Positions 1 through 14,649 of a stretch of 14,649 nucleotides of DNA are shown here, piece by piece. This stretch comes from Octopus sinensis. Its lineage: Eukaryota. The notes beneath the pieces were generated by a model, which searched no databases, was not told the DNA's origin, and saw only the letters and a list, made by a program, of their open reading frames with translations. Every line of letters begins with the position of its first letter. Position 1 is the stretch's first letter. The stretch spans positions 1 through 14,649 of the forward strand of contig NW_021825772.1 of assembly GCF_006345805.1 (NCBI RefSeq). The letters are read 5' to 3'. A program made the position numbers and the translations under genes.

Positions 1-16
1 GATAGATAGATAGATA
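1..16. repeat. (GATA)n microsatellite, cut by the window edge; abuts the 3' end of LINE copy A
   Basis: Four perfect GATA units at the window start. Confidence 0.95.
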
Positions 17-1449
17 ACTTTCTTTTATTAGCCACACAGGGTTGAATACAGAGGGGACAAATACAAATGCAGAGCTTTTCTTTTCGAGGGTGGAAAAAAA
101 TAAATGTAAGATTGCGATCAAAAGGGATCGAGAGGAGGAAAAAAAAAATAAAAAAAAATCGTGTATCACAGAAAAATGATAAAAACATTGATAAAAACAA
201 GATTGGGTCATCCGTGGGAAGAAAAGCCTACAGAAAAGACCACGGGAACCTCAGTCAGGGAGGAAATAACCACATGAGATCAAAATGCTATCTTTCTTTC
301 TTTTTTACGATCTACAGGATCATGTCAAAATGGTTTCGTCACTCGCACGCACATCTTTGCAACATTCACCCATCTTTTTTTTAATCTTTCGCGAGACAAA
401 ACTTCCCTCTCCATTCTCACCTTCCTTTTCAAGTGGTACTTGAAAAAGTTGATGAGCGATTGGCCAGAGAGGTGGAAGTGTTTGTCTCTAATCCTTTCGC
501 TCGGGTCCACCACACACATTCTTTCACCATGGCCACCAGTACGATGAAAACTGCCTTGTCTTTCCGGTTGAGGGAAAGGGGCGGAGAGCAATTCCCACAA
601 TAGACTCGGCCGATAGGCGGATTCGTCCCACACGTGACAGCAGCCGTTCGGCATAAGCCCACAGGTCTGAAATGGTTGGACATTGCACGAGTGCGTGCAG
701 AACGGTTTCGTCGCTCTGACCGCATCTCGGGCAAGTCGGTCCAGTGTGTCTGGACCGTGTCTGTAGAGCTTATCCCGAACAGGTAATGCTTCTCGATAGC
801 ACTGCCAGGCCAGGGATCTTTGGGGTTGTTCATAGGTCCCGGCCCGAAAGTTGTCCTGAACAGGCGGGTCAGGTGTTCCTCGTCGACGCCCAGACTCTGC
901 CCGAGTTCGTCGTCGCACCTCCTCCACTAATCCTCTATAGAATGCCTTTGTTGTGATGGAGTTGCACAAGTTCGATCCCGGACGCAGAGTTGCTTGAGAG
1001 CAACGCGACACTCGCGGTGCCATTCGCCTAGCCTCGGTCTCTGCTTGATCCATGACTGTAGTTCGTCCAAGGAGACGAGCTGCGGGAAAGCGCGCCGCAC
1101 AAAAGGCGACCACACCTGTTCACCGTTGTCTATGAAGCGCCGGAGATGTCGCAGTCTCAGCGCATGTCTGCGCATCATCAACCACGGCATGCCCAGCCCT
1201 CCATTTAGCGGGTGTTGACAGCAAATGGATCGCCTAACCATCGGAACGTTTCCCTTGCACAAGAAGCGGAAGAGTATACATTCCAGTTTGGTGATGGTAG
1301 GGTCGGGACAAGGCACGACGGTCAGACGATACTCGATGACGGATGCGATGTACGCGTTCGCCACCTCCGCCCGACCTTTTAGGGATAGATTTCTCTCAGC
1401 CCATTTCTGGGTGAGAGTAGCCACACTAGGCGTTATCTCGCCCCAGTTC

Positions 1450-2250
1450 TTCTCCATTTGGAGGTCCGGACCGAACCAGACCCCGAGCAATTTAACCGGT
1501 CCGTCCGTCCAGCGTCCCACGATGGAGACGCTGTTGGACGGCATGGGCCTGCTTCTCCAGGTGCCGAGCCGCAAGCCCACTGACTTTTCCCGGTTAATTT
1601 TTGCTCCCGTTATCGCTTCGTATTCTTTTAGTGTCTCGCCGACCAGCTCTATGTGCTCGTAGCTCGACACTATGACGGTGACGTCATCCGCGTATGCTGA
1701 CACGCTCCTCCCGCATCCCAGCTCTCGTGGCATGCCCCTCAGCGTCGCCAGTTTCCGCAGTAGTGCTCAAGAGTCAATACATACAGCAGCGATGAGAGGG
1801 GGCATCCCTGACGAACCGAACGCATGATGTTAAAAGGTCTGGATAGATGACCATTTACGCGAACTACTGAGCGGATGCCGCTGTATAAGGCAGCGATCCA
1901 ACGCGGAAAACTGGACCGAAACCAGCCGCTTAAGGACAGCCTCGAAGTAGTGATGGTCTACCCTATCGAAGGCTTTTGATTGATCCAAATTGATCAGCGC
2001 CCCACCCATGCCAGGATTCTTAACTACCCTGTCTATGATGTAGCGCATCAGATGGAGGTTGTCATGAATACTTCTACCCGCACGGCGCATGTTTGCGCCT
2101 TGTCGATTAGTTTCTTGATGACAAGCGCCAACCTCTCGGCTAACACCTTGGCCAAAATTTTCAAATCTGCGTTGAGCAGAGTGATGGGCCTGAAAATTAT
2201 ATGACGTCCCCCTTGTTGGGTCTTTCTTAATCAGTGCCACTGATCCTCGC
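1450..2250 (-). other. Reverse transcriptase core of copy A ORF2
   Basis: RPITLLN, DQSKAFDRV, RQGCPLS, YADD and KLLG motifs in the expected order; boundaries approximate. Confidence 0.9.
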
Positions 2251-2999
2251 TTTACAAAGCAGGAATACTCCCGTTTTCTGCCAGTTGCAGTAGACAGCTG
2301 CCAAGACGCCTCCAAACAAGTCTGGCATATGAAATTAAAGTTCGTAGGGCAGACCATCCAAGCCTGGTGACTTGTCTCTCGCGCAGCCTACCATCGCATC
2401 CTGTACGTCCGCAGCTGTGATAGGCCTTTCACAAGACTCCACCTCTTTTGCTGAGAGTCGTGGCAAGGCATGCAGGTAGGCACTAAAGTCCACTCTGCGT
2501 TCTGACCCACCACTTGTCCCAAACAGTTGGGTGAAGTGTTGTTGAAAAGCTCCACACATCCTTTTAGGCTCGAGCAATACGCGCCCCTGTTCATCTATAA
2601 GAGACTTGATGGTGGCTCTGTTGCCTCGTTGCGTCTCCACCACTCGGGCCTCTTGGGCGGCTCCAACTCCTTCGTTCATCAGAGCACGCATCCTAGCTCT
2701 GACAACGCATCCCTCGTGTTTGGCGTTGAGGTGTTGGTCGAGGACCAATCTCGCCGCCAGCACGTTGGACGCGATGCCAGTTCTAAGTGCCTCTTCTAAA
2801 GCCTTAACTAATTCTCCCTCTATTCTATTTCGGTCTAATGCTAGTGCTTTACTGTATCTGACTGATTCTGCTTTAATTGCTCTTTTTAGAGCATACCACC
2901 ATCTGTTGTTGATGATGGTACCCGTCAAAGCTCCCTTAACTAATGTGCTGATCCGGTCCCTGTAAACCTGTCGTGCTGTAAAAGACGCGTTCAGTTTCC

Positions 3000-3727
3000 A
3001 GTAACCAGGACCCTGCCTATGTGTCTTATCTAAGTCAAGTGTACAAGTCACAAACTTGTGATCTGTGTAACTGTCTATATGAAATTGTGGACAACCTACG
3101 CTATTTTTATCTATTGTCCTACAGAATACTCTATCTAAGTATGATCTGGACGACCCGATGCGGTTACTCCATGTCCACATTGGCACATTCGGGTGGTCCA
3201 GTCGGTACCTGTCAGACAGTTGGAAACGTCTGAGCAGGTCTTTGAGGCATTTGCATCCCCTTCTATTGCTATCTCTGCCCACGTAGTCTAGATGCGTGTC
3301 CAGGTGGCATTCCAATCCCCCACTAAAAGTAAAGGACGAGACGTTCCATGAAAGACTCTAGACGTCGAAAGAAATCTGGTCGGCCTGTTAAGGACGGAGC
3401 ATAAACTGCTATCAGTCGAAAAGCACACTCATTGCTGCCATCGACATCCAAGACGACCAGCCTACCCTCCGGGTCTAGGAAAATTGCTCTTACTTTGAGA
3501 TCTAGACTCTTCCGGAGAAGCACCGCGGTGCCACCTCCGCCCATTCTCGGAGAAAAATAAATGTTAAAATGTGTACCGAAACTGTGCTGGAGTGCCCGCA
3601 AGCTGTGGAGTCTGGTCTCACTGATGGCTATGATATTCAGATTTAGTGACTTGATGTCATTTAACAGGTAGCCTTGTTTCCAAGGCGACCCCAAGCCACG
3701 TACATTTATACTGCCTATTCTGAGCAT
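3000..3727 (-). other. APE-type endonuclease domain of copy A ORF2
   Basis: NVRGL, E in SETR, Y in VYAP, GDWN, D in YLDR and TDH catalytic-type motifs; spans two 1-bp frameshifts near 3303 and 3346. Confidence 0.88.
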
Positions 3728-3796
3728 GTTCCGATAAAAAATTGTGTTTTACACACGAAAAGAAAGTGCAAAAATGAAAGAGAGAGAGAGAAAAGG

Positions 3797-5883
3797 TTAC
3801 TTGTTGTTCGAAAGTCCTTTGTTTTTCACCTCACAATCTTCTTCTATGAGGCTTTTGTATAGTTTTTTGATGAATACTTTTGAAATCTCCCTACTGCATT
3901 AGGGTAAAGAGATTTCAGGGTGCTGTATGTGTTCTGTGTTACGTGTATTATTTTAATGTGTTGTGGTGTGTGTTGTGCGTGGGTGGTTACTTGTTTTTAT
4001 GTCGTTTTCAGTATGTTAGTGTGTTTGACCTAATGTGTTCCATTAGGTCGTGGTTGTTTGTGTTTATGGCTGTCAACATTGTTGTGGGGTTTGATGATGG
4101 TGTGTTTGTGTTGATGTGTTTGTTTTCTGTGGATGTTTTTGTTTCGGGAGTGGTGAATCTTCCTGCTTTGTTTGTTATCTTTTCTTTTCTTTTTTTTTCT
4201 TTTCTTCTCCCCCCTGTGGCTATTTGCCAATCTTCTGTGTCTTCTTCGTCTAATGACAATCAGAAGAATCAGAGCTGGAAGAGGGAAAATATTGGGGTCT
4301 ATTGTAGACTGTGTTGATTTTGTTGTTGGTGTTGGTGGGTGAGCGTTAGTTGTGGTGTATGCGGTTTTGGAGGTGGGTGTGGGTATTTTGTGTTTGAGTG
4401 ATTGTAGGTATTGTTGTGTTGTTTGGAGTGTCAATTTTGTGGGGATTTGGAGTAGTAATTGTTTCTTCATTTTCGATGAGTGTCTTTTTGGCAGATCTCC
4501 TTGGTTTGGTAGTTGGTTTATTCTTGGTTGTTGTTGTTGTTGGTGATGTTGCTTCTGTTCTTGGTGCAGTTGGTGTGGTTGTTTGGTTGGTGAGGTTTGT
4601 TTTTTGTTGATTTTCTGTGATTAGTCCTGTTTGTGCAAAACGTGGTGTGGGTAGTAAACCTGGTTTATTTGTTTTTTCCGTTGTTTTTTCGTGCTGTTTT
4701 CTTGCGGCAGATTTGCAGTCTTTTTTTAGGTTTTGTTCACTGCCGCATATGTAGCAACGTGGCCTTCTGCCATCGACGACCACATACACCTTGTGGTCTT
4801 CTGATACACATATCTGGGTGGGTATTTTCTTTATGTCTTCTTGGTTTATATGTAGTAGAAATTCTACATTTTTTCCCACCCAGTTTTTGTGCTCCGTGAC
4901 CGTGGTTTCCAAAATTGTGAAATCTTTCATTTTCACACATAAGGCCTTTACTAACCAGAGATTGTTAGCTATTTTTGGGACGTTGTTTAAAGTGATCTTA
5001 GTCACTTTCTGTCCACGATAGCTTGGTATTAATGTCAGTTCATCTGAATGAAGAGTTAGCGTTGAGAAACGTTTTGCTAACTCTTCAGTGTGGAAAACCA
5101 CTTGTATGTGTGCGAACTTGCTCCACCAGGTCACATAGTCTTTGTAGTTCCAGATGGGTTTCAAGCATTTTTTATTTTGCTTGTGTTAGCCTTCTCTGGA
5201 CTTTTTGTTTTCTTATTAATTATTTTATAAATAATTGTTCTTTTTTTTTCATCTTCTAATATTTCTTCTGGTATGTTTATTTTTACTATACCATCTACTT
5301 CTGTTATTAAAATGTTCGTGTCTTTTATTTGTTGTGCAGTAAAATATACTGTTGTCTTTTTTTCTTTAATCGCCTCGGCGAAATTTGTTGTTGTTTTGTT
5401 ATTGTTGTTGCTGGTGGTGATGTTGTTGTTGGCTGCAGTTGGTAAATTTGGTGTATTTGGTTTGATTGTGCAAGTAGAAAGGGGTGGAAAATTACTTGCA
5501 TAATTTATTTCTGTATTCGAGCAGCTTTTGTCAATTTGTTTGGTGGTCACAGTCTTTTGTTTATTCACTTCAGTTCTTGTTGTTGGAGTAAAACAGGTCT
5601 GAACGGAATTGTTGTTGTTGTTATTGTTGTTTTTGTTGTTGGTGGTAGTGTCAGTGGCAGAAGAGACAGCCGTGGCAGCAGATGTCGAAATGGTGGCGCA
5701 ATTTTTATTTTTGTTGTCATTGTTATTTTTGTTGTTGTTGGTAGTTGAGGTAGTGGATGAGGTGGCGGCGGTGGTGGTGGTGGTGGTGAAGGCGGTGGTG
5801 GTAACAGTAGTAGTCTCTATGTTGTTCTTGCTAGTGGTGGTGTTGGTGACAGGGCTGTTACTACAAGTAGTTGTAGCGTTCAT
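3797..5883 (-). pseudogene. ORF1 of copy A (gag-like nucleic-acid-binding protein with low-complexity T/N arms and one degenerate zinc knuckle), frameshifted
   Basis: ATG at 5883. Track ORFs 5161-5883, 4346-5164, 4030-4470 and 4008-4259 join by small frameshifts. CYICGSEQNLKKDC at 4715-4756. The last segment reads KVFIKKLYKSLIEEDCEVKNKGLSNNK-TAA (3797-3799). The true start may be the ATG at 6013. Confidence 0.75.
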
Positions 5884-6211
5884 TGCAAAGTCATTGATGA
5901 TTTTACTTTGCGCGCATAAATTCTTTTTTTTTTTCTCCTAGCGTTTCCAGTCTAGGAGAAAGCTGGTCGATAAAGGAACGCGACCATCGTTCTACAATAC
6001 AATTTCTTGACATTTTCAAAATGTTGAGAAAGAAATTACAAAAGTTAAATAGGGTTGAAACTGTCCCTAGGGGCGAATTCCTCCCATGGAAAAGCACTCA
6101 AACGAAAGTTGGGTGCCTTACACACCTTATTTACAAAAATGTACACAAAATATGGGCTATAAATAGTCAAAAAAACAACGATTACCTTCGGAGCGAAGTG
6201 ACAGCACGTCC

Positions 6212-6219
6212 ATAGACAG

Positions 6220-6290
<71 letters not shown>

Positions 6291-6310
6291 ATTAGAGATA
6301 TAGATAGATA
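6212..6310. repeat. (GATA)n microsatellite between the 5' end of copy A and the 3' end of copy B
   Basis: Perfect GATA run 6221-6290 with degenerate edges (atagacaga; attagagatatagatagata). Confidence 0.95.
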
Positions 6311-7403
6311 TGTTTCTTTATTAGCCACACAGGGCTGCACACAGATAGAACAAATTACAAGGTAGAGCTTTTCTTTTGAAGGTTTAAAAAAAAAAAAAAG
6401 GGGGAGTTTCGATCAAAAGGGATCGTAAAAGGAGAGAAAGAGGACAAAAAAAGGGGGGTAAAAAAAAAAAAAAAAGGGGGGGAGAGGAAAAAAAAGTTGA
6501 TCAATAGGGATCGTTATCACAGAAATGTCAATATGAAGTGTAAAGGGGAGGACAGGTGAGGTTTACCCGTGGAAAGAAAAACCTACGGAAAAGACCACGG
6601 TAACCTCGGTCAATGAAGTCACATTTTATATTTCTTTTTTTTTTTTTTTTTTTTTTTTGCAAATAAGCAACTCTCTGTTTTCGATTTCTGGGTTCATAGG
6701 ACTATGCTCAAGGTGGCTTCGTCATTCATACGTGCCATTCTTGCTACATTCACCCATCTTTTTTTAAAACATTCGCTAGACAAAACTTGCCTCTCTACTC
6801 TCACTTTCCTTTTCAAGTGGTACTTGAAGAAGTTGATGAGAGATTGACCAGAGAGGAAAGTGTTTGTCTCAAATCCTTTCAGACGCGTCCACCAGATACA
6901 TTCTTTCGCCATAGCCACAAGATGATGAAAATAGCTCTTCCTTCCCGTTTGAAGGAAGGAGGCGTGACAATATTGACGATAGACTCAGCTGATAAACCGA
7001 CTCGTCCCACACGTGACAGCAGTTGTTCGACATAAGCCCACAGGTCGGAAATTGTTGACACTGAACGAGTGCGGCAGAACGGTTTCGTCGCTCTGACCGC
7101 ATCTCGGGCAGGTCGGCCCCGTGTTTCTCGAGCCGTGTCTGTAGAGCTTATCCCGAACGGGTAGCGCTTCTCGGTAGCATTGCCAGGCCAGGGATCTCTG
7201 GAAGTTGTCCATGGGCCCTGGCCCGAAAGTCGTCCCGAACAGGCGGGTCAGGTACTCCTCGTCGACGTCCAGGTTCGCCCCGAGCTCGTCGTCGTACCTC
7301 CCCTCCACTAAACCCCTATAGAATGCTTTGGCTGTGTTGAAGTCACTTAAGGTCGACCCAGGACGGCAGAGTTGCTTGAGAGCAACGCGACACTCGCGGT
7401 GCC

Positions 7404-7404
<1 letters not shown>
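6311..7404 (-). mobile_element. Tx1-group LINE copy B, 5'-truncated (~1.1 kb)
   Basis: ORF2 C-terminus (LAWQCYREALPVRDKL, CPRCGQ, stop TGA at 6694-6696) plus 3' UTR with AATAAA (6317-6322). Homology to copy C stops at ...cactcgcggtgcca (7404), where GATA begins. Confidence 0.92.

Positions 7405-7472
<68 letters not shown>
7405..7472. repeat. (GATA)17 microsatellite between copies B and C
   Basis: 68 bp perfect GATA run. Confidence 0.97.
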
Positions 7473-9582
7473 TGTTTCTTTATTAGCCACACAGGGCTGC
7501 ACACAGATAGAACAAATTACAAGGTAGAGCTTTTCTTTTGAAGGTTTTAAAAAAAAAAATAATAATAATAATAAAATAACAATAAAATAAAATAAAAAAG
7601 GGGGGTCGATCAAAAGGATCTCGTAAAGGAGAGAAAGAGGACAAAAAAAGGGGGGGGTTAAAAAAAAGGGGGAGAGGAAAAAATTGATCAATAGGGATCG
7701 TTATCACACAGAATGTCCATATGAAGTGTAAGGAGGACAGGTGAGGTTTACCCGTGGAAAGAAAAGCCTACGGAAAAGACCACGCTAACCTCGGTCAATG
7801 AAGTCACATGTTATATTTCTTTTTTTTTTTTTTTTTTGCAAATAAGCAACTCTCTGTATTAATTTTTACGGTTCATAGAACCATAGTCAAGGTGGCTTCG
7901 TCATTCACGTGCCATCCTTGCTACATTCACCCATCTTTTTTTAAAACATTCACTAGACAAAACTTGCCTCTCTACTCTCACTTTTTTCTTCAAGTGATAC
8001 TTGAAGAAGTTGATGAGAGATTGACCAGAGAGGAAAGTGTTTGTCTCTAATCCTTTCAGACGCGTCCACCAGATACATTCTTTCGCCATAGCCACAAGTA
8101 TGATAAAATAGCTCTTCCTTCCCGTTTGAAGGAAGGAGCGTGACGATATTAACGATAGACTCGGCTGATAAACCGACACGTCCCACACGTGACAGCAGTC
8201 GTTCGACATAAGCCCACAGGTGGGAAATTGCTGGACACTGCACGATTGCGTGCAGAGCGTTTCGTCGCTCTGCCCGCATCTCGGGCAGGTCGGCCCCGTG
8301 TTTCTCGAGCCATGCCTATAGAGCTTATCCCGAACGGGTAGCGCTTCTCGGTAGCACCGCCAGGCCAGGGATCTCTGGAAGTTGTCCATAGGTCCCGGGC
8401 CGAAAGTCTTTGAAACAGGCGGGTCAGGTATTCCTCGTCGACGCCCAGGTTTGCCCCGAGCTCGTCGTCGTACCTCCCCTCCACTAATCCCCTATAGAAT
8501 GCTTTGGTTGTGTTGAAGTCACTCAAGGTCGACCCGGGACGGCAGAGTTGCTTGAGAGCAACGCGACACTCGCGGTGCCATTCGCCCTTCTTCGGCCTCT
8601 TTTTGATCCACGACTGTAGTTCGGTCATGGAGACGAGTTGCGGGAATGCGTGCCTCACAAACGGCGACCACACCTGTTCACCGTCGTCTACATAGAGCCG
8701 GAGATGTCGCAGTCTCAGCGCGTGTCTGCGCATCATCAACCACGGCATGCCCAGCCCTCCTTTTAACGGGTGTTGACAGCAAATGGATCGCCTGACCATC
8801 GGGACGCATCCTTTCCACAAGAAGCGAAGAGGATGCGTTCTAGTTTGGTGATGGTAGGGTCGGCAAGGTACGACGGTCAGGCGGTAGTAGATGATGGACG
8901 CGATGTACGCGTTCACCACCTCCGCCCGACCTTTTAGGGACAGTTTCCTCTCGGCCCATTGCTGGGCGAGAGTGACCACCTACTCGTTATCTCGTTCCAG
9001 TTCTTCTCCATTTGGAGGTCCGGACCGAACCAGACCCCGAGCAACTCAACCGGGCCGTCTGTCCAGCGTCCCACGACGGAGGTACTGGTGGACGGCATGG
9101 GTTTGCTTCTCCAGGTGCCGAGCCGCAAGCCCACTGACTTTTCCCGGTTGATTTTTTGCTCCTGTCACCGCTTCGTAGTCTTTCAGTGTCTCGCCGACCC
9201 GCTCGATGTGCTCGTGGCTTGACACTATGACGGTGACGTCGTCCGCGTATGCAGACACGCTCGTCCCGCATCCTAATTCTCGCGGGATGCCCCTCAGAGT
9301 CGCCAGCTTCCGCAGTAGTGGCTCAAGAGTCAATACGTATAGAAGCGCCGAGAGGGCATCCCTGACGGACCGAACGTGCAATGTCGAAGGGTCTCGATAG
9401 ATGTCCATTTACGCGAATTACCGAACGGATGCCTCTGTACAAGGCAGCTATCCACCGCGGAAGACGGGACCGAAACCAGCCGCTCTCAGGACTGCCTCCA
9501 AGTATCGATGGTCTACCCTATCAAAGGCTTTCGATTGATCCAAGTTGATCAGGGCCCCACCCATGCCAGGTTCGTTAACTAC
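7473..9582 (-). mobile_element. Tx1-group LINE copy C, 5'-truncated (~2.1 kb), same subfamily as copy B
   Basis: Runs from the RT motif LDQSKAFDRV through YADD (9238-9249), LSLKGRA, GGLGMP and CPRCGQ to the stop at 7873-7875 and a 3' UTR with AATAAA (7479-7484). Homology to copy A ends at ...ttaactac (9582). Frameshifted. Confidence 0.92.
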
Positions 9583-9626
9583 TACGCCATATGCCCGTAG
9601 GCAATTATGGAGTGAATTTTTAGGGC

Positions 9627-10281
9627 TTATAAATCTAATATTTTTCTATTCTTCCTTAATACCGGTTGCTCATATCTGTTCAGACGGTTGTTGTGCTGCT
9701 TCTTTTAGTTTTCATATTTTCCAGTGGTGTTCTCTGTCTATTATTTTAACTTCATCCCACAGGGGGAGGTGGTCTCCATTTTTCCATATATGATCAGCTA
9801 TACCCGATTTATCAATATCTCCCCGTGTCACAGCTTTGCAATGTTCATCTACCTTTATTTTGATGGGTTGGCATGTTTCGCCTTAGTATAACCTACCACA
9901 GCAGCATGGGATGGAGTACAAGCAGTTTTTGTTCATATTCTCTTCTATTGGTGGTTTTACTCGAAGGAGATGTTTGCGAAGTATATTACTTTTGAATACT
10001 GTCCTGATGTCATATGGGCCGCATATCTTTGTATCTCTTCGAAGAAGCCTTTCACATAGAGTAGACAGACTGTGGATAGTTTATTGGCTTCATTCTCTCT
10101 TCTCCTCATAATTGGAGTGGATAGTATGTTTGGGGGTAGTTGTTGCTTAACAGATTGTTACTTAGCTTGATCATTTCTTCGTGGTGGTATCACGATCGCT
10201 ACTTATATTCTTCGCTCAATGTTTTAGGCACTGAGCAATCCCTCTCTTTACACTGTATGGATGGTGGGAATTGAAGTTGAG
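9627..10281 (-). mobile_element. Decayed Penelope-like element fragment (RT thumb plus GIY-YIG endonuclease)
   Basis: Manual translation gives LNFNSHHPYSVKRGIAQCLKH*AKNISS, then NNLLSNNYP, then TVCLLYVKG, GPYDIRTVFKSN, NKNCLYSIPCCCGRLY*GETCQPIKIKVDEHCKAVTRGDIDKSGIADHIWKNGDHLPLWDEVKIIDREHHWKI*KLKEAA. Contains stops and frameshifts, so it is absent from the ORF track. Confidence 0.85.
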
Positions 10282-10335
10282 ACAGACAGAGACGATACAC
10301 AGAGAGATAGACAAAGCAAGAGAGAAAGTATTTCA

Positions 10336-10563
10336 TATTTCTTTACTACCCTCAAGGGGCTAAACACAGAGAGGACAAACAAGGGCAGACAAACGGATTA
10401 AGTCGATTATATCGACCCCAGTGCGTAACTGCTACTTATTTAATCGACCCCGAAAGGATGAAAGGCAAAGTCGACCTCGGCGGAATTTGAACTCAGAACG
10501 TAACGGCAGGCGAAATACGGCTACGCATTTCGTCCGGCGTGCTAACGTTTCTGCCAGCTCGCC
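10336..10563 (-). mobile_element. ~230 bp SINE with tRNA-like head (recalled as an octopus family), with a 20-bp target site duplication
   Basis: Near-identical to 14065-14292. Head ggcgagctggcagaaacgttagc, B-box-like gagttcaaattcc. Flanked by gcaagagagaaagtatttca at 10316-10335 and 10564-10583. Confidence 0.9.
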
Positions 10564-10824
10564 GCAAGAGAGAAAGTATTTCAGTTAACGAATGTGTCCA
10601 TCACAAGGAGTGAAAAAAATATCTTGATAGCAGAGCTATAATGATTTCCACCCCTTCTCCATGGAAAGAAAAAAACCGCTGTAGAATGATTAGTAATACA
10701 GACAAGGAGCTTACCGCATGGAGGTAAAATTGCAAAAAGTTTGGCGAATGTAAGGCATAGCTCTAATGCGGGTCATTTGAAGGCAATGAAATTATTATCA
10801 GTGGCCTCCTTTGTTGGTTTAAAC

Positions 10825-11093: not shown

Positions 11094-11297
11094 GTTTAAA
11101 GTAATCATGAGTGCATTGTACATTGTCCTGAGACTGATAGAGTAAAAAAAAAATGAACGTTTTAGTGAAGTTTCGTTGATTGTGTGACATTAAATTGTAT
11201 CCGGCAATGAGGTTCCACCTCCGAAGTTCATGAGTTCTGATGCAGTGTGGAACAACCCCTTAGTCAACACTACTTTCAAGAGTACTCTGACGATTTT

Positions 11298-11395
11298 TGG
11301 TGTTGGTGGTGGTGGTGGTGGTGGTGATGATGAAGGTCGTAGTAGTTGTGATGGTGGTATTGGTGGTGATGGTGACTGTGGTATTGCTGCTGCTG
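11298..11395. repeat. Compound trinucleotide microsatellite (GGT/GAT/GCT)
   Basis: Visible GGT, GAT and GCT runs. Confidence 0.85.
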
Positions 11396-11762
11396 TTGCT
11401 GTTACAGTTGAGCTGTTGAGCGAAGCTGTCTTCGTTCCAGTGGGAGAAGTCCGAAAAGTGGTCCTTTGCTATTCGTAATACCCGCAGAAGAGAAAGCAGG
11501 TCAACCCCCGACACCGAGAGCAACCGACGGATGGATGAATGCGCATCCAGGCTCAGCGGTTGCGTAGAAAGTCGGGGGCATGAAACAGGAAGAAAGAGTG
11601 AGAGAAAGTTGGGGCGAAAGAGTACAACAGGGGTCGCCACCACCCCTTGCCGGAGCCTCGTGGAGCTTTAGGGGTTTTCGCTCAATAAACACATACAATG
11701 CCCGGTCTGGGAATCGAAACCGCGAGTCCGCTGCCCTAACCACTGGGCCATTGCGCCTCCAC
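11396..11762 (-). mobile_element. tRNA-derived SINE of a second family, inserted in a CAG/CTG repeat
   Basis: Minus-strand head gtggaggcgcaatggcccagtggttagggcagcgg with A box TGGCCCAGTGG and B-box-like GTTTCGATTCC. Candidate 12-bp TSD ttgctgctgctg at 11384-11395 and 11763-11774. Confidence 0.8.
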
Positions 11763-11886
11763 TTGCTGCTGCTGCTTGTGACGATGATGAGGATGACGAT
11801 GATGACGACCATCACCCCCAACACCATCACCACCCATCACCACCACCACCATCACGACGACGACGACGATGATGATGGTGGTGTGG
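11763..11886. repeat. Compound trinucleotide microsatellite (GCT/GAT/CAC/GAC/GGT)
   Basis: Visible runs of these triplets. Confidence 0.85.
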
Positions 11887-12491
11887 TTGATAGTAAGGGA
11901 AATTCAATAATGGTCCGGGGTGGTGTTACTTGTCAAAGCCCCCAAGAATAAAAGATTGTCCCATAGTTAAAGGCATACAGGACTCAGAAGATGGCAGGCC
12001 CTTAGATATTTATCATAAAGGCTCATCAGCCGACATCACGTGAACCATATACTGGCAGAAACAACGAAAAGCTTCTGCTGTGTTTTCTGCAGAAAAATTA
12101 TGTAGCTTCAGATTTTGTCATGAAAATCCATAACCGATGTCACCTGTAAAAACAGACATGGTACGTGAAGAGAGCTGGAGAGCATTGTAGAACTGGAAAC
12201 AAACATAGGGAAGAATATGAGAAAGCTTTTTTCTAAGATGGCAAACAGTTTACGAAGTTTTATTGATTGAGAAAAGAAAAAAAAAGAGTAGAAAATTTTG
12301 GAGGATTCCTTAGACTTAACAAGTCTTCAAAAGGTCCAGCTACAATTTAGGAAGTGAAAGAAGTTGCTGGGTGAAACATGCATCTTTTGTTTTCAGAAGT
12401 GTATTTTTTGAAAGAGAATCAGCGGTGAGTAAAGTCATCCAGTTGATGAAGTGGTAAGTTTCCTCTGCTGTTGCTTCTGTTGGTGCTGATT

Positions 12492-13130: not shown

Positions 13131-13589
13131 ACACGCATTTATTTTTAATGAGATTTTCCAGCTGTCTTCGTCTCGAATGTTTGTGAAAGAAAATATAAAT
13201 GCAACGATAGTTCAGCAACAGGTCGGTCAAACATTATAAAAACAACCTCAAACGCAACCAACATAGCCAAGGCTTTCTATGTGGAAATCGGTTCCATCGC
13301 CGGTCAAAATATTGACAAGGGTAAACTAATAGTCAACGACAAGAATTAACGGGAAAAACATGAGATTCAGCTTTCAGAAATACAAGAGGCATGCAGTATA
13401 GCAAGTATTACAAGACGGCAATTTTGTCGGATGTGTCACAGAGGGTTATTCAAAGAATCGATGAACGGTAACCTATTGATGAATAACTCATTGAGCAGAG
13501 AAACAAACACACAGAAAGGGAAAGCAATGTTTGAAATCTCTGTGAGAGAGAAAAGGCATCATTCGTTGTGAATATTCCAACTATCTGCG

Positions 13590-13660
13590 CTCTGAGTTCA
13601 AATACAGCCGACATCAACTCTGCTTTACATCTTTTATGGGGTCGATAAAAGAAGTATCAA
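13590..13660 (+). mobile_element. Old, diverged internal fragment of the ~230 bp SINE family
   Basis: tctgagttcaaatacagccgacatcaactctgctttacatcttttatggggtcgataaaagaagta aligns by eye to SINE ...gagttcaaattcagccgagatcgactcggcctttcatcctttcggggtcgataaattaagta. Confidence 0.7.
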
Positions 13661-14064
13661 TCGAGGTTGATGAACTGGTGGAACTTAAGAATGCCGGTCC
13701 AGATGTCTTGCGGTATTTATTCCGGCTTTTTGCATTCATAATTAAATTCCTGCTACTCGGTAGAGTTAGTCCATCACCCGGTTTAATACCACCACTTGGC
13801 AATTTTGGTTACTTTTAGTGGAGTCCATTTTGTCGTAAGTATTTAAGTGAGGTTTCGTGTTCGGGGCTACCTTTCTCCCCTCTTCTTACCAGTCCTTGAG
13901 GCCCTGTAAAGGGTCATGAACATTACGTTCCCCTATACTTAAAAATATATATAAAGAAGATATACATTACCCATGGAGAACATTTTGTTGCAGCAGATGC
14001 CAGATTTTCCAGTTGCCGAACCGCTTAAGAACAAGGATTCCACACTTATACTAAGATATATGAG

Positions 14065-14292
14065 GGCGGCGAGCTGGCAGAAACATTAGCATGCCGGGCG
14101 AAATTCCTAGCGGTATTTCGTCTGCCGTTACGTTGAGTTCAAATTCAGCCGAGATCGACTCGGCCTTTCATCCTTTCGGGGTCGATAAATTAAGTACCAG
14201 TTGCGCACTGGGGTCGATATAATCGACTTAATCCGTTTGTTTGTCCTTGTTTGTCCTCTCTGTGTTTAGCCCCTTGTGGGTAATAAAGAAAT
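14065..14292 (+). mobile_element. ~230 bp SINE, complete copy, with a 9-bp target site duplication
   Basis: ggcggcgagctggcag...gagttcaaattc...gtgggtaataaagaaat. Flanked by atatatgag at 14056-14064 and 14293-14301. Near-identical to the reverse complement of 10336-10563. Confidence 0.9.
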
Positions 14293-14649
14293 ATATATGA
14301 GCAGATGTGTGATAAAGGTAACAGTTGGGCGTGCCTACAAGACAAACTTACCGATGGCTAATTGTGATTGTTTTGCTTGATGTAGCTAAAATTAAGATTC
14401 AAAAAGTAGACTGGTTTGATGTAGACATATCCCTGATTAGATATGGCCAATGCTAACTAGAAAAGGAGCAAAAATTATCTAGTTAATGGAACAACCACAT
14501 GGAATTCGGTTAAATATAACGCTCGAAGGTGAACGACCTGTGACGCAAACCACTGAATGGCTTTCTGCTAAAATGAAAGAGTGAAAGCGCGAAAGAGGAA
14601 GGACCTCCCCCCACTCCCCTACCTCACCTACTGCACTCACACTTTCTAC

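Follow-up and report, generated by a model that had tools for sequence, protein, structure and literature searches.

Tail sharing between SINEs and LINEs is a textbook phenomenon. Stringent-type pairs with a common 3′ tail include eel UnaL2/UnaSINE1, turtle CR1 with a Pol III SINE, and tobacco TS with RTE; L1-clade LINEs are the partners in only 3 of 58 catalogued tail-sharing pairs (PMC3747384). Among Tx1 systems, crocodilian SINEU is mobilised by Tx1-Mar, and Kibi and Koshi are microsatellite-specific Tx1 elements (PMC4494074).

SINEs are among the largest repeat classes of octopuses and feature prominently in discussions of how cephalopod genomes evolved. In O. vulgaris, about 12% of the genome consists of SINEs. 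The octopus SINEs OK, OR1 and OR2 were reportedly described by Ohshima and Okada in 1994. In octopus repeat annotations, "tRNA-Core" and "tRNA-Deu" SINEs dominate (PMC8967140). The octopus repeat surveys consulted here report abundant, mostly unclassified SINEs together with active L1-Tx1 families and name no partner (including PMC13282606). A keyword search of a literature library found no paper that names a partner LINE for octopus SINEs. Here we analyse a stretch of 14,649 nucleotides from Octopus sinensis (contig NW_021825772.1; "the window") in which SINE and LINE copies end in the same sequence.

A co-terminal tail on SINE and LINE copies of the window

The window holds three LINE copies and two copies of one SINE (Table 1). 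LINE C, B and A form a head-to-tail array on the minus strand, in which the 5′ ends of B and A abut the (TATC)n of the preceding copy; the 5′ side of LINE C has no (TATC)n. The LINE could itself add (TATC)n as a tail, into which further copies then tend to insert; alternatively, one pre-existing microsatellite could have been the target of repeated insertion. In the ORF1 region of LINE A (4346-5164), the zinc knuckle reads CYICGSEQNLKKDC, with Asn in place of the His of CX2CX4HX4C. With this substitution and several frameshifts in ORF2, LINE A is a dead copy.

Table 1. Positions of the elements and their parts. Coordinates refer to the window unless a locus is named.
Feature	Position	Strand	Remarks
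SINE copy 1	14065..14293	+	about 229 bp, non-coding; ends set by target-site duplications
LINE-like 3′ tail of SINE copy 1	14245..14293	+	36/44 to LINE B/C, 31/38 to LINE A
Upstream target-site duplication, SINE copy 1	14057..14064		TATATGAG; possibly 9 bp, ATATATGAG; read from sequence
Downstream target-site duplication, SINE copy 1	14294..14301		TATATGAG; read from sequence
B-box-like motif, SINE head	14135..14146	+	GAGTTCAAATTC; read from sequence
Conserved central block of SINE	14158..14196	+	..GCCTTTCATCCTTTCGGGGTCGATAAAT.AAGTA..; 39 nt, SINE positions 93-131
SINE copy 2	10336..10564	-	tail 10336-10384; 34/44 to LINE B
Target-site duplication, SINE copy 2, tail side	10317..10335		TGAAATACTTTCTCTCTTG on minus strand
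Target-site duplication, SINE copy 2, head side	10565..10583		perfect 19-bp repeat of 10317-10335
LINE copy A	18..6215	-	full length (about 6.2 kb), degraded, frameshifted; 5′ end approximate
LINE A ORF1	about 5883-4346	-	CX2CX4NX4C knuckle
LINE A ORF2	APE from 3727, RT about 2357-927, stop near 325	-	Pfam Exo_endo_phos, RVT_1
LINE A 3′ UTR and tail	UTR about 300 nt, tail 18-66	-	sequence
LINE copy B	6311..7403	-	5′-truncated, 1.1 kb; tail 6311-6362; 94-97% identical to copy C
LINE copy C	7473..9590	-	5′-truncated within RT, about 2.1 kb; tail 7473-7524; 5′ end approximate
(TATC)n after LINE A	1..17	-	cut by window edge
(TATC)n between LINE B tail and LINE A 5′ end	6220..6310	-	repeat
(TATC)17 between LINE C tail and LINE B 5′ end	7404..7472	-	repeat
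LINE relative 3′ end with tail	L126, ends 11070		O. sinensis
LINE relative 3′ end with tail	L128, ends about 11190		A. hians
LINE relative 3′ end with variant tail	L127, near 12285		A. hians; seen in sequence, outside motif count
Truncated LINE copy 3′ end with tail	L127, ends 12650		A. hians

Several other features lie within or near the array. The LINE 3′ UTRs (about 80-330, 6400-6650 and 7560-7830) contain a CCGTGG...CCACGG hairpin-like block and CGATCCCTTTTGATCG; both are common to LINE A, B and C and to a relative in an ENA metagenome (L124, 960-1130), and the SINE has neither. Just upstream of the truncated 5′ end of LINE C, positions 9640-10000 of the minus strand hold a broken frame (...CLYSIPCCCGRLY, stop, GETCQPIKIKVDEHC...SGIADHIWKNGDHLPLWDEVKIIDREHHWKI, stop). 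This frame may resemble the part of a Penelope-like element that encodes its terminal GIY-YIG endonuclease, an identity that Pfam, with no match, did not confirm. Long (GGT)n/(ATC)n-type triplet runs with imperfect inverted repeats occupy 11260-11950. Rfam also gives sub-threshold miRNA matches in this region (mir-598, 32 bits where the gathering score is 69), which most likely stem from the repeats.

The two SINE copies are 90-93% identical to each other in a repeat search within the window, and neither has poly(A) or a microsatellite at its 3′ end. Both terminate in ...AATAAAGAAATA, with GAAATA followed directly by the target-site duplication. Together with homologues in Argonauta hians, they have the properties of a SINE: they are short, non-coding, dispersed and multicopy, and they carry target-site duplications. 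In two independent copies, the duplications (8-9 bp and 19 bp) flank head and tail together, so that the LINE-like tail is intrinsic to the SINE and not an adjoining LINE fragment.

A tRNA origin of the head was considered and rejected. ARAGORN detected no tRNA in it and Rfam, searched with the SINE alone, gave no tRNA match even at E ≤ 10; only the B-box-like motif was seen. At the B-box position, the Argonauta homologue of the window SINE has a near-canonical GTGTTCGAATCCCA. Upstream of the tail, the SINE contains a palindrome of its own, GTCGATATAATCGAC. Degraded fragments of an older related SINE lie side by side at 13585-13665 (B box to central block; score 41.5 against SINE positions 69-134) and 13672-13743 (head-like, SINE positions 6-80), and neither includes the tail.

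The central block has a wider distribution than the tail. It is 93-97% identical in more than 120 SINE-like copies on JGI host-associated metagenome contigs (loci L004-L123), and the heads and 3′ modules of these copies differ strongly from those of the window SINE. The shared tail is absent from all of these copies, which were found through the central block and represent other SINE families. Because one block is common to SINE families with unrelated heads and tails, it behaves, as far as its sequence distribution goes, like a SINE-superfamily central domain of the CORE or Deu-Nin type. Identity with the MIR-type CORE is not supported, as alignment to a MIR core sequence was not significant (score 10.5 compared to 10.9 ± 1.9 for shuffles).

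The preliminary description of this DNA had aligned the SINE and LINE ends by hand and without gaps, and its counts were all reproduced. The end of SINE copy 1 (14250-14293) matches the end of LINE B (reverse complement of 6311-6354) at 36 of 44 positions, the second SINE copy (reverse complement of 10336-10379) matches LINE B at 34 of 44, and LINE A (reverse complement of 24-61) matches 14250-14287 at 31 of 38. LINE C (reverse complement of 7473-7516) also gives 36/44 with 14250-14293. The "ccttg" block that had been noted upstream of the tail in LINE B and the SINE is real, but aligning it needs a 3-nt gap. As had also been claimed, the ends are co-terminal, since local alignment stops no more than 2 nt from both termini. 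Gapped local alignment (SINE positions 180-226) places the homology solely in the terminal 43-55 nt of the two elements, which in the LINE form the end of the 3′ UTR. An unprompted repeat search recovered the same match as inverted repeats I4 and I5 (47 nt, 83%).

We compared the match with 200 dinucleotide-preserving shuffles of the SINE, each searched against both strands of the whole window with the SINE copies masked, a comparison of the kind that the preliminary description had proposed. The observed Smith-Waterman score was 28.5, while the shuffles had a mean of 15.0 (sd 1.6) and none of the 200 reached the observed score. When all matches of the SINE in the window are ranked, the three LINE 3′ ends, and nothing else, come directly after its own copies and one old SINE fragment. 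A match by chance or composition might be suspected from, for example, a shared AATAAA signal and T/G-rich sequence, as the last 12 nt (TAATAAAGAAA) are of low complexity and include a polyadenylation-like hexamer. The probability of this explanation is negligible, given that the highest shuffle score was 21, that the match is co-terminal in both elements, and that the tail recurs in O. sinensis and A. hians loci but is absent from control DNA (below). The shared co-terminal tail is real and not a product of chance.

Class of the LINE and distribution of its tail

To classify the LINE, we combined domain and structure searches of the window copies and their relatives. Pfam recognised Exo_endo_phos and RVT_1 pieces in ORF2 of LINE A, APE, RVT_1 and zf-RVT in full-length relatives, and zf-RVT in close relatives. 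An ORF2 in which APE precedes RT and a zinc-binding region lies at the C terminus (seen as zf-RVT in relatives) is the arrangement of the L1 superfamily. In ORF1 of a 48%-identical relative, zf-CCHC was found at E = 0.0014, a weak match below the Pfam cut-off, and no RRM was detected in ORF1. The nearest solved structure for the RT piece of the window is human L1 ORF2p (2e-4). For an intact relative (P0050), human L1 ORF2p scored 7e-43 compared to 1e-22 for R2; as the PDB contains no CR1, RTE or Jockey RT, this makes the enzyme L1-type in a coarse sense only. Poly(A) is absent from the LINE copies. Thus, the LINE clearly belongs to the L1 superfamily, as judged from its APE endonuclease, RT, zf-RVT, ORF1 zinc knuckle, lack of poly(A) and nearest structure.

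Membership of the Tx1 clade fits the data, on the basis of architecture and published RepeatMasker-type labels rather than a tree. The ORF1 knuckle resembles the Type I kind described for Tx1-type elements (PMC5203782). Tx1 elements lack poly(A), and insertion into repeats, microsatellites among them, is common for them (PMC4494074). Of the LINE classes with recent activity in O. vulgaris, L1-Tx1 alone is L1-type, with 13 families (PMC13282606). All three window LINE copies abut (TATC)n, and relatives lie in varied sequence. In protein searches with the LINE, no Tx1-named protein was among the matches. In NCBI/nr, one close relative of ORF2 (P0002) bears the name "zinc-binding domain-containing protein" and is assigned to a Herbaspirillum sp. 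MAG, where it almost certainly reflects host or eukaryotic contamination of the bin.

A profile search with the C-terminal region of the LINE returned protein relatives from Argonauta hians and O. sinensis, and a protein search added one from the cuttlefish Acanthosepion pharaonis. We examined three octopod loci, one from O. sinensis (L126) and two from A. hians (L127 and L128), which total 64 kb. With up to 4 edits permitted, we counted 21 instances of the tail motif CCCTTGTGGCTAATAAAGAAA in these loci and 0 in 359 kb of control loci. Five LINE-relative 3′ ends with the tail were verified, either by their distance of 220-270 nt from the ORF2 stop or as the end of a 5′-truncated 3′-UTR copy; four of the five were caught by the motif count. 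In BLAST comparisons between LINE lineages (window, O. sinensis and A. hians), only the coding sequence and the terminal 30-49 nt align, the latter at 80-97%. The protein identity of lineages with the tail falls to about 47%, and the rest of their 3′ UTRs cannot be aligned.

Most of the remaining tail occurrences terminate SINE-like elements of several families. In one family of A. hians, homology to the window SINE runs from the B box through the central block and a GTCGAT..ATCGAC hairpin as far as the tail; the 5′ head of this family is different, and its target-site duplications are 11-13 bp long. In A. hians, LINE and SINE tails agree at 28 of 29 positions over the last 30 nt. Thus, at the level of sequence, the pairing of LINE and SINE tails appears again in a second genus, Argonauta.

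Some tail-bearing elements in A. hians lie close together. In L127, 12013-12650 includes a 230-nt 5′-truncated LINE 3′ fragment about 130 nt after the tail of a longer copy, and at about 15180-15314 a SINE is inserted directly behind the tail of another element (…GAGAAATC|TATAGG…). In L128, two short tail-bearing elements lie in tandem at 5151-5361, 157 nt apart. New insertions seem to favour sequence beside older tails.

Searches of other collections were less informative. There were 0 matches to the window SINE pattern in a scan of genome contigs, 0 to the shared-tail pattern in a scan of metagenome contigs, and 0 in scans of viral contigs for more copies of the SINE/tail family. Among the LINE relatives on short metagenome contigs, the 3′ UTR is divergent in L003 and homologous in L124, where the contig breaks off about 30 nt before the end of the UTR; the contig of L129 ends 113 nt past the stop codon. 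A resemblance to the tail in L125 was discarded as not significant (score 10, compared to 10.1 for shuffles).

Source of the SINE tail and a putative route of mobilisation

We asked which LINE tails the SINE tail most resembles. It agrees with LINE tails at 34-37 of 41-43 positions (81-86%), with the best match to an O. sinensis LINE, and LINE tails agree among themselves at 31-40 of 40-43 positions, so that the SINE tail is no more distant from LINE tails than these are from one another. The SINE-specific positions CCTTGTGG (compared to CCTGTGTGG in LINE A, B and C) and GAAAT match the LINE tails of O. sinensis and A. hians. Because of this agreement, the SINE tail appears to derive from this LINE group, and the direct partner or source subfamily is probably one other than window LINE A, B and C.

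Sequence similarity by itself has no direction, and SINE copies far outnumber LINE copies in the examined loci. One could therefore propose the reverse transfer: an abundant SINE would have donated the terminal ~45 nt to the LINE group, perhaps through template switching, with some other origin for the SINE tail. We consider this very unlikely. The tail ends LINE lineages whose proteins are as little as ~47% identical and which also diverge in the remainder of the 3′ UTR, and it is carried by SINE-like families that differ in head and body; repeated copying of a single ancient LINE tail is a simpler account than many separate captures by LINEs.

The preliminary description had gone on to propose that the SINE is mobilised by this Tx1 family or a relative, through sequence-specific recognition of the tail. 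The partner-pair part of that proposal is supported and extended, since the tail lies inside the SINE duplications, on five related LINE ends and on SINE-like families of Argonauta. The window copies themselves are probably not the direct partner, which the wording "or a relative" allows for, and both the Tx1 label and sequence-specific recognition are putative.

The model that we regard as likely is that the SINE is a composite element whose 3′ module comes from an octopod L1-superfamily (Tx1-like) LINE, and that it is mobilised in trans by a stringent mechanism. The SINE would consist of a head with a B-box-like promoter motif, the deeply conserved 39-nt central block, a short body and a LINE-derived 3′ module of about 45 nt. 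The donor would be a LINE group without poly(A), with the consensus terminus ...TCTGTGT..GCCCTTGTGGCTAATAAAGAAAT. Its ORF2 protein, with APE endonuclease, RT and a zinc-binding C terminus, would recognise this module at the end of the SINE transcript in the same way as on the LINE RNA. The protein would then nick the target and prime reverse transcription there, leaving target-site duplications of 8-19 bp. We infer that ORF2p binds the tail and that this LINE group, rather than another, is the source of the enzyme; from the shared sequences, the SINE would be mobilised by the group in trans.

We also looked for a hairpin in the tail. The predicted hairpin is GCCC-CUUGU-GGGU in the SINE, with GGCC/GGCU or AGCC/GGCU in the LINEs. 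A GCCC/GGGU-type hairpin is compatible in 87% of cells, compared to ~47% for slid controls, and does not exceed shuffle controls. There is one compensatory pair only, from a single event. Stability above that of shuffles was not found (energy z-scores of -1.2 to +0.9), and recognition by structure is therefore hypothetical.

The insertion junctions have a common feature. TAT directly follows 19 of 26 LINE and SINE copies, compared to a background of ~0.02 per position, and lies within the duplication wherever duplications can be resolved. This suggests a common target or microhomology preference and is a hint of shared machinery. The accumulation of copies in (TATC)n and beside older tails would also follow from a preference of this kind. 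Short tandem repeats at the terminus are not a common feature: (TATC)n follows LINE A, B and C, and both window SINE copies lack it. In A. hians, neither the LINE nor the SINE partner has a long terminal repeat.

The tail could be LINE-derived but a relic, such that the SINE moved by means of another LINE clade or mechanism and the shared sequence no longer matters. This would fit the observations that, among the LINE tails compared, none exceeds 86% identity with that of the SINE and that terminal (TATC)n is not common to LINE and SINE. Other candidate enzymes exist, as RTE, CR1 and Dong-R4 families have also been recently active in octopus (PMC13282606), and the LINE reported to be expressed in octopus brain is an RTE (PMC9115989). 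However, in several different SINE-like families, and in LINE lineages with as little as ~47% protein identity, no part is better conserved than the last ~30 nt. This argues for continuing selection on the tail. The TAT junction is also common to LINE and SINE copies. We therefore regard a relic tail as unlikely, although less so than a reverse transfer, and favour stringent mobilisation in trans.

Comparison with described SINE-LINE systems

To judge by the shared, conserved tail, the enzyme is likely to come from the L1/Tx1-like group, which makes this group a concrete candidate for the driver of octopod SINE expansion. A broader model, which we put forward only tentatively, is that a Tx1-like LINE group that recognises a 3′ module of ~30-45 nt instead of poly(A) may be the engine of an octopod-specific SINE expansion. 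Several SINE families with different heads would have captured the module, and module and TAT-type target would have persisted since before the split of Argonauta and Octopus. If the partnership is as we propose, it would clearly exemplify, in animals, stringent template choice by a member of the L1 superfamily, where tail-sharing SINE partners are rare, and would bear on when poly(A)-based relaxed recognition arose.

Of the octopus SINEs described previously, the window SINE can be likened to them by description only: it is abundant, about 230 bp long, and has a conserved central block and target-site duplications. Unlike the octopus SINEs that carry tRNA labels, its head contains no tRNA according to ARAGORN and Rfam.

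The octopod pair also resembles mammalian L1 with Alu or B1, in that an ORF2p with APE and RT presumably acts in trans on a small non-coding RNA, and in that the target-site duplications are of similar size. The mammalian system is relaxed and depends on poly(A), whereas the octopod elements have no poly(A) and share a specific terminal sequence.

Like Tx1 LINEs, the octopod LINE is APE-type and has no poly(A), an ORF1 zinc knuckle, an association with (TATC)n, and head-to-tail arrays. As in Tx1 systems, its copies and those of the SINE share an insertion-junction signature, here TAT. The link between SINEU and Tx1-Mar was argued from target preference (PMC4494074), whereas the octopod link is argued from the shared tail. 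Unlike the target-specific Tx1 elements, target specificity in the octopod system is weak at most, and SINE copies lie in ordinary unique sequence.

The closest parallel is with the stringent pairs. As in those pairs, the last tens of bases of the SINE are homologous to, and co-terminal with, a LINE of the same genome, neither element has poly(A), the tail is conserved among relatives of the LINE, and one tail is reused by several SINE families. Three differences stand out. In UnaL2/UnaSINE1, terminal short repeats are shared and required, whereas the octopod (TATC)n is found on LINE copies only. Stringent pairs have a conserved stem-loop, whereas the hairpin of the octopod tail is weak and predicted only. 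Finally, unlike the LINE of most stringent pairs, the octopod partner belongs to the L1 superfamily. The partnership is thus of a familiar kind, but one rarely documented for L1-type LINEs.
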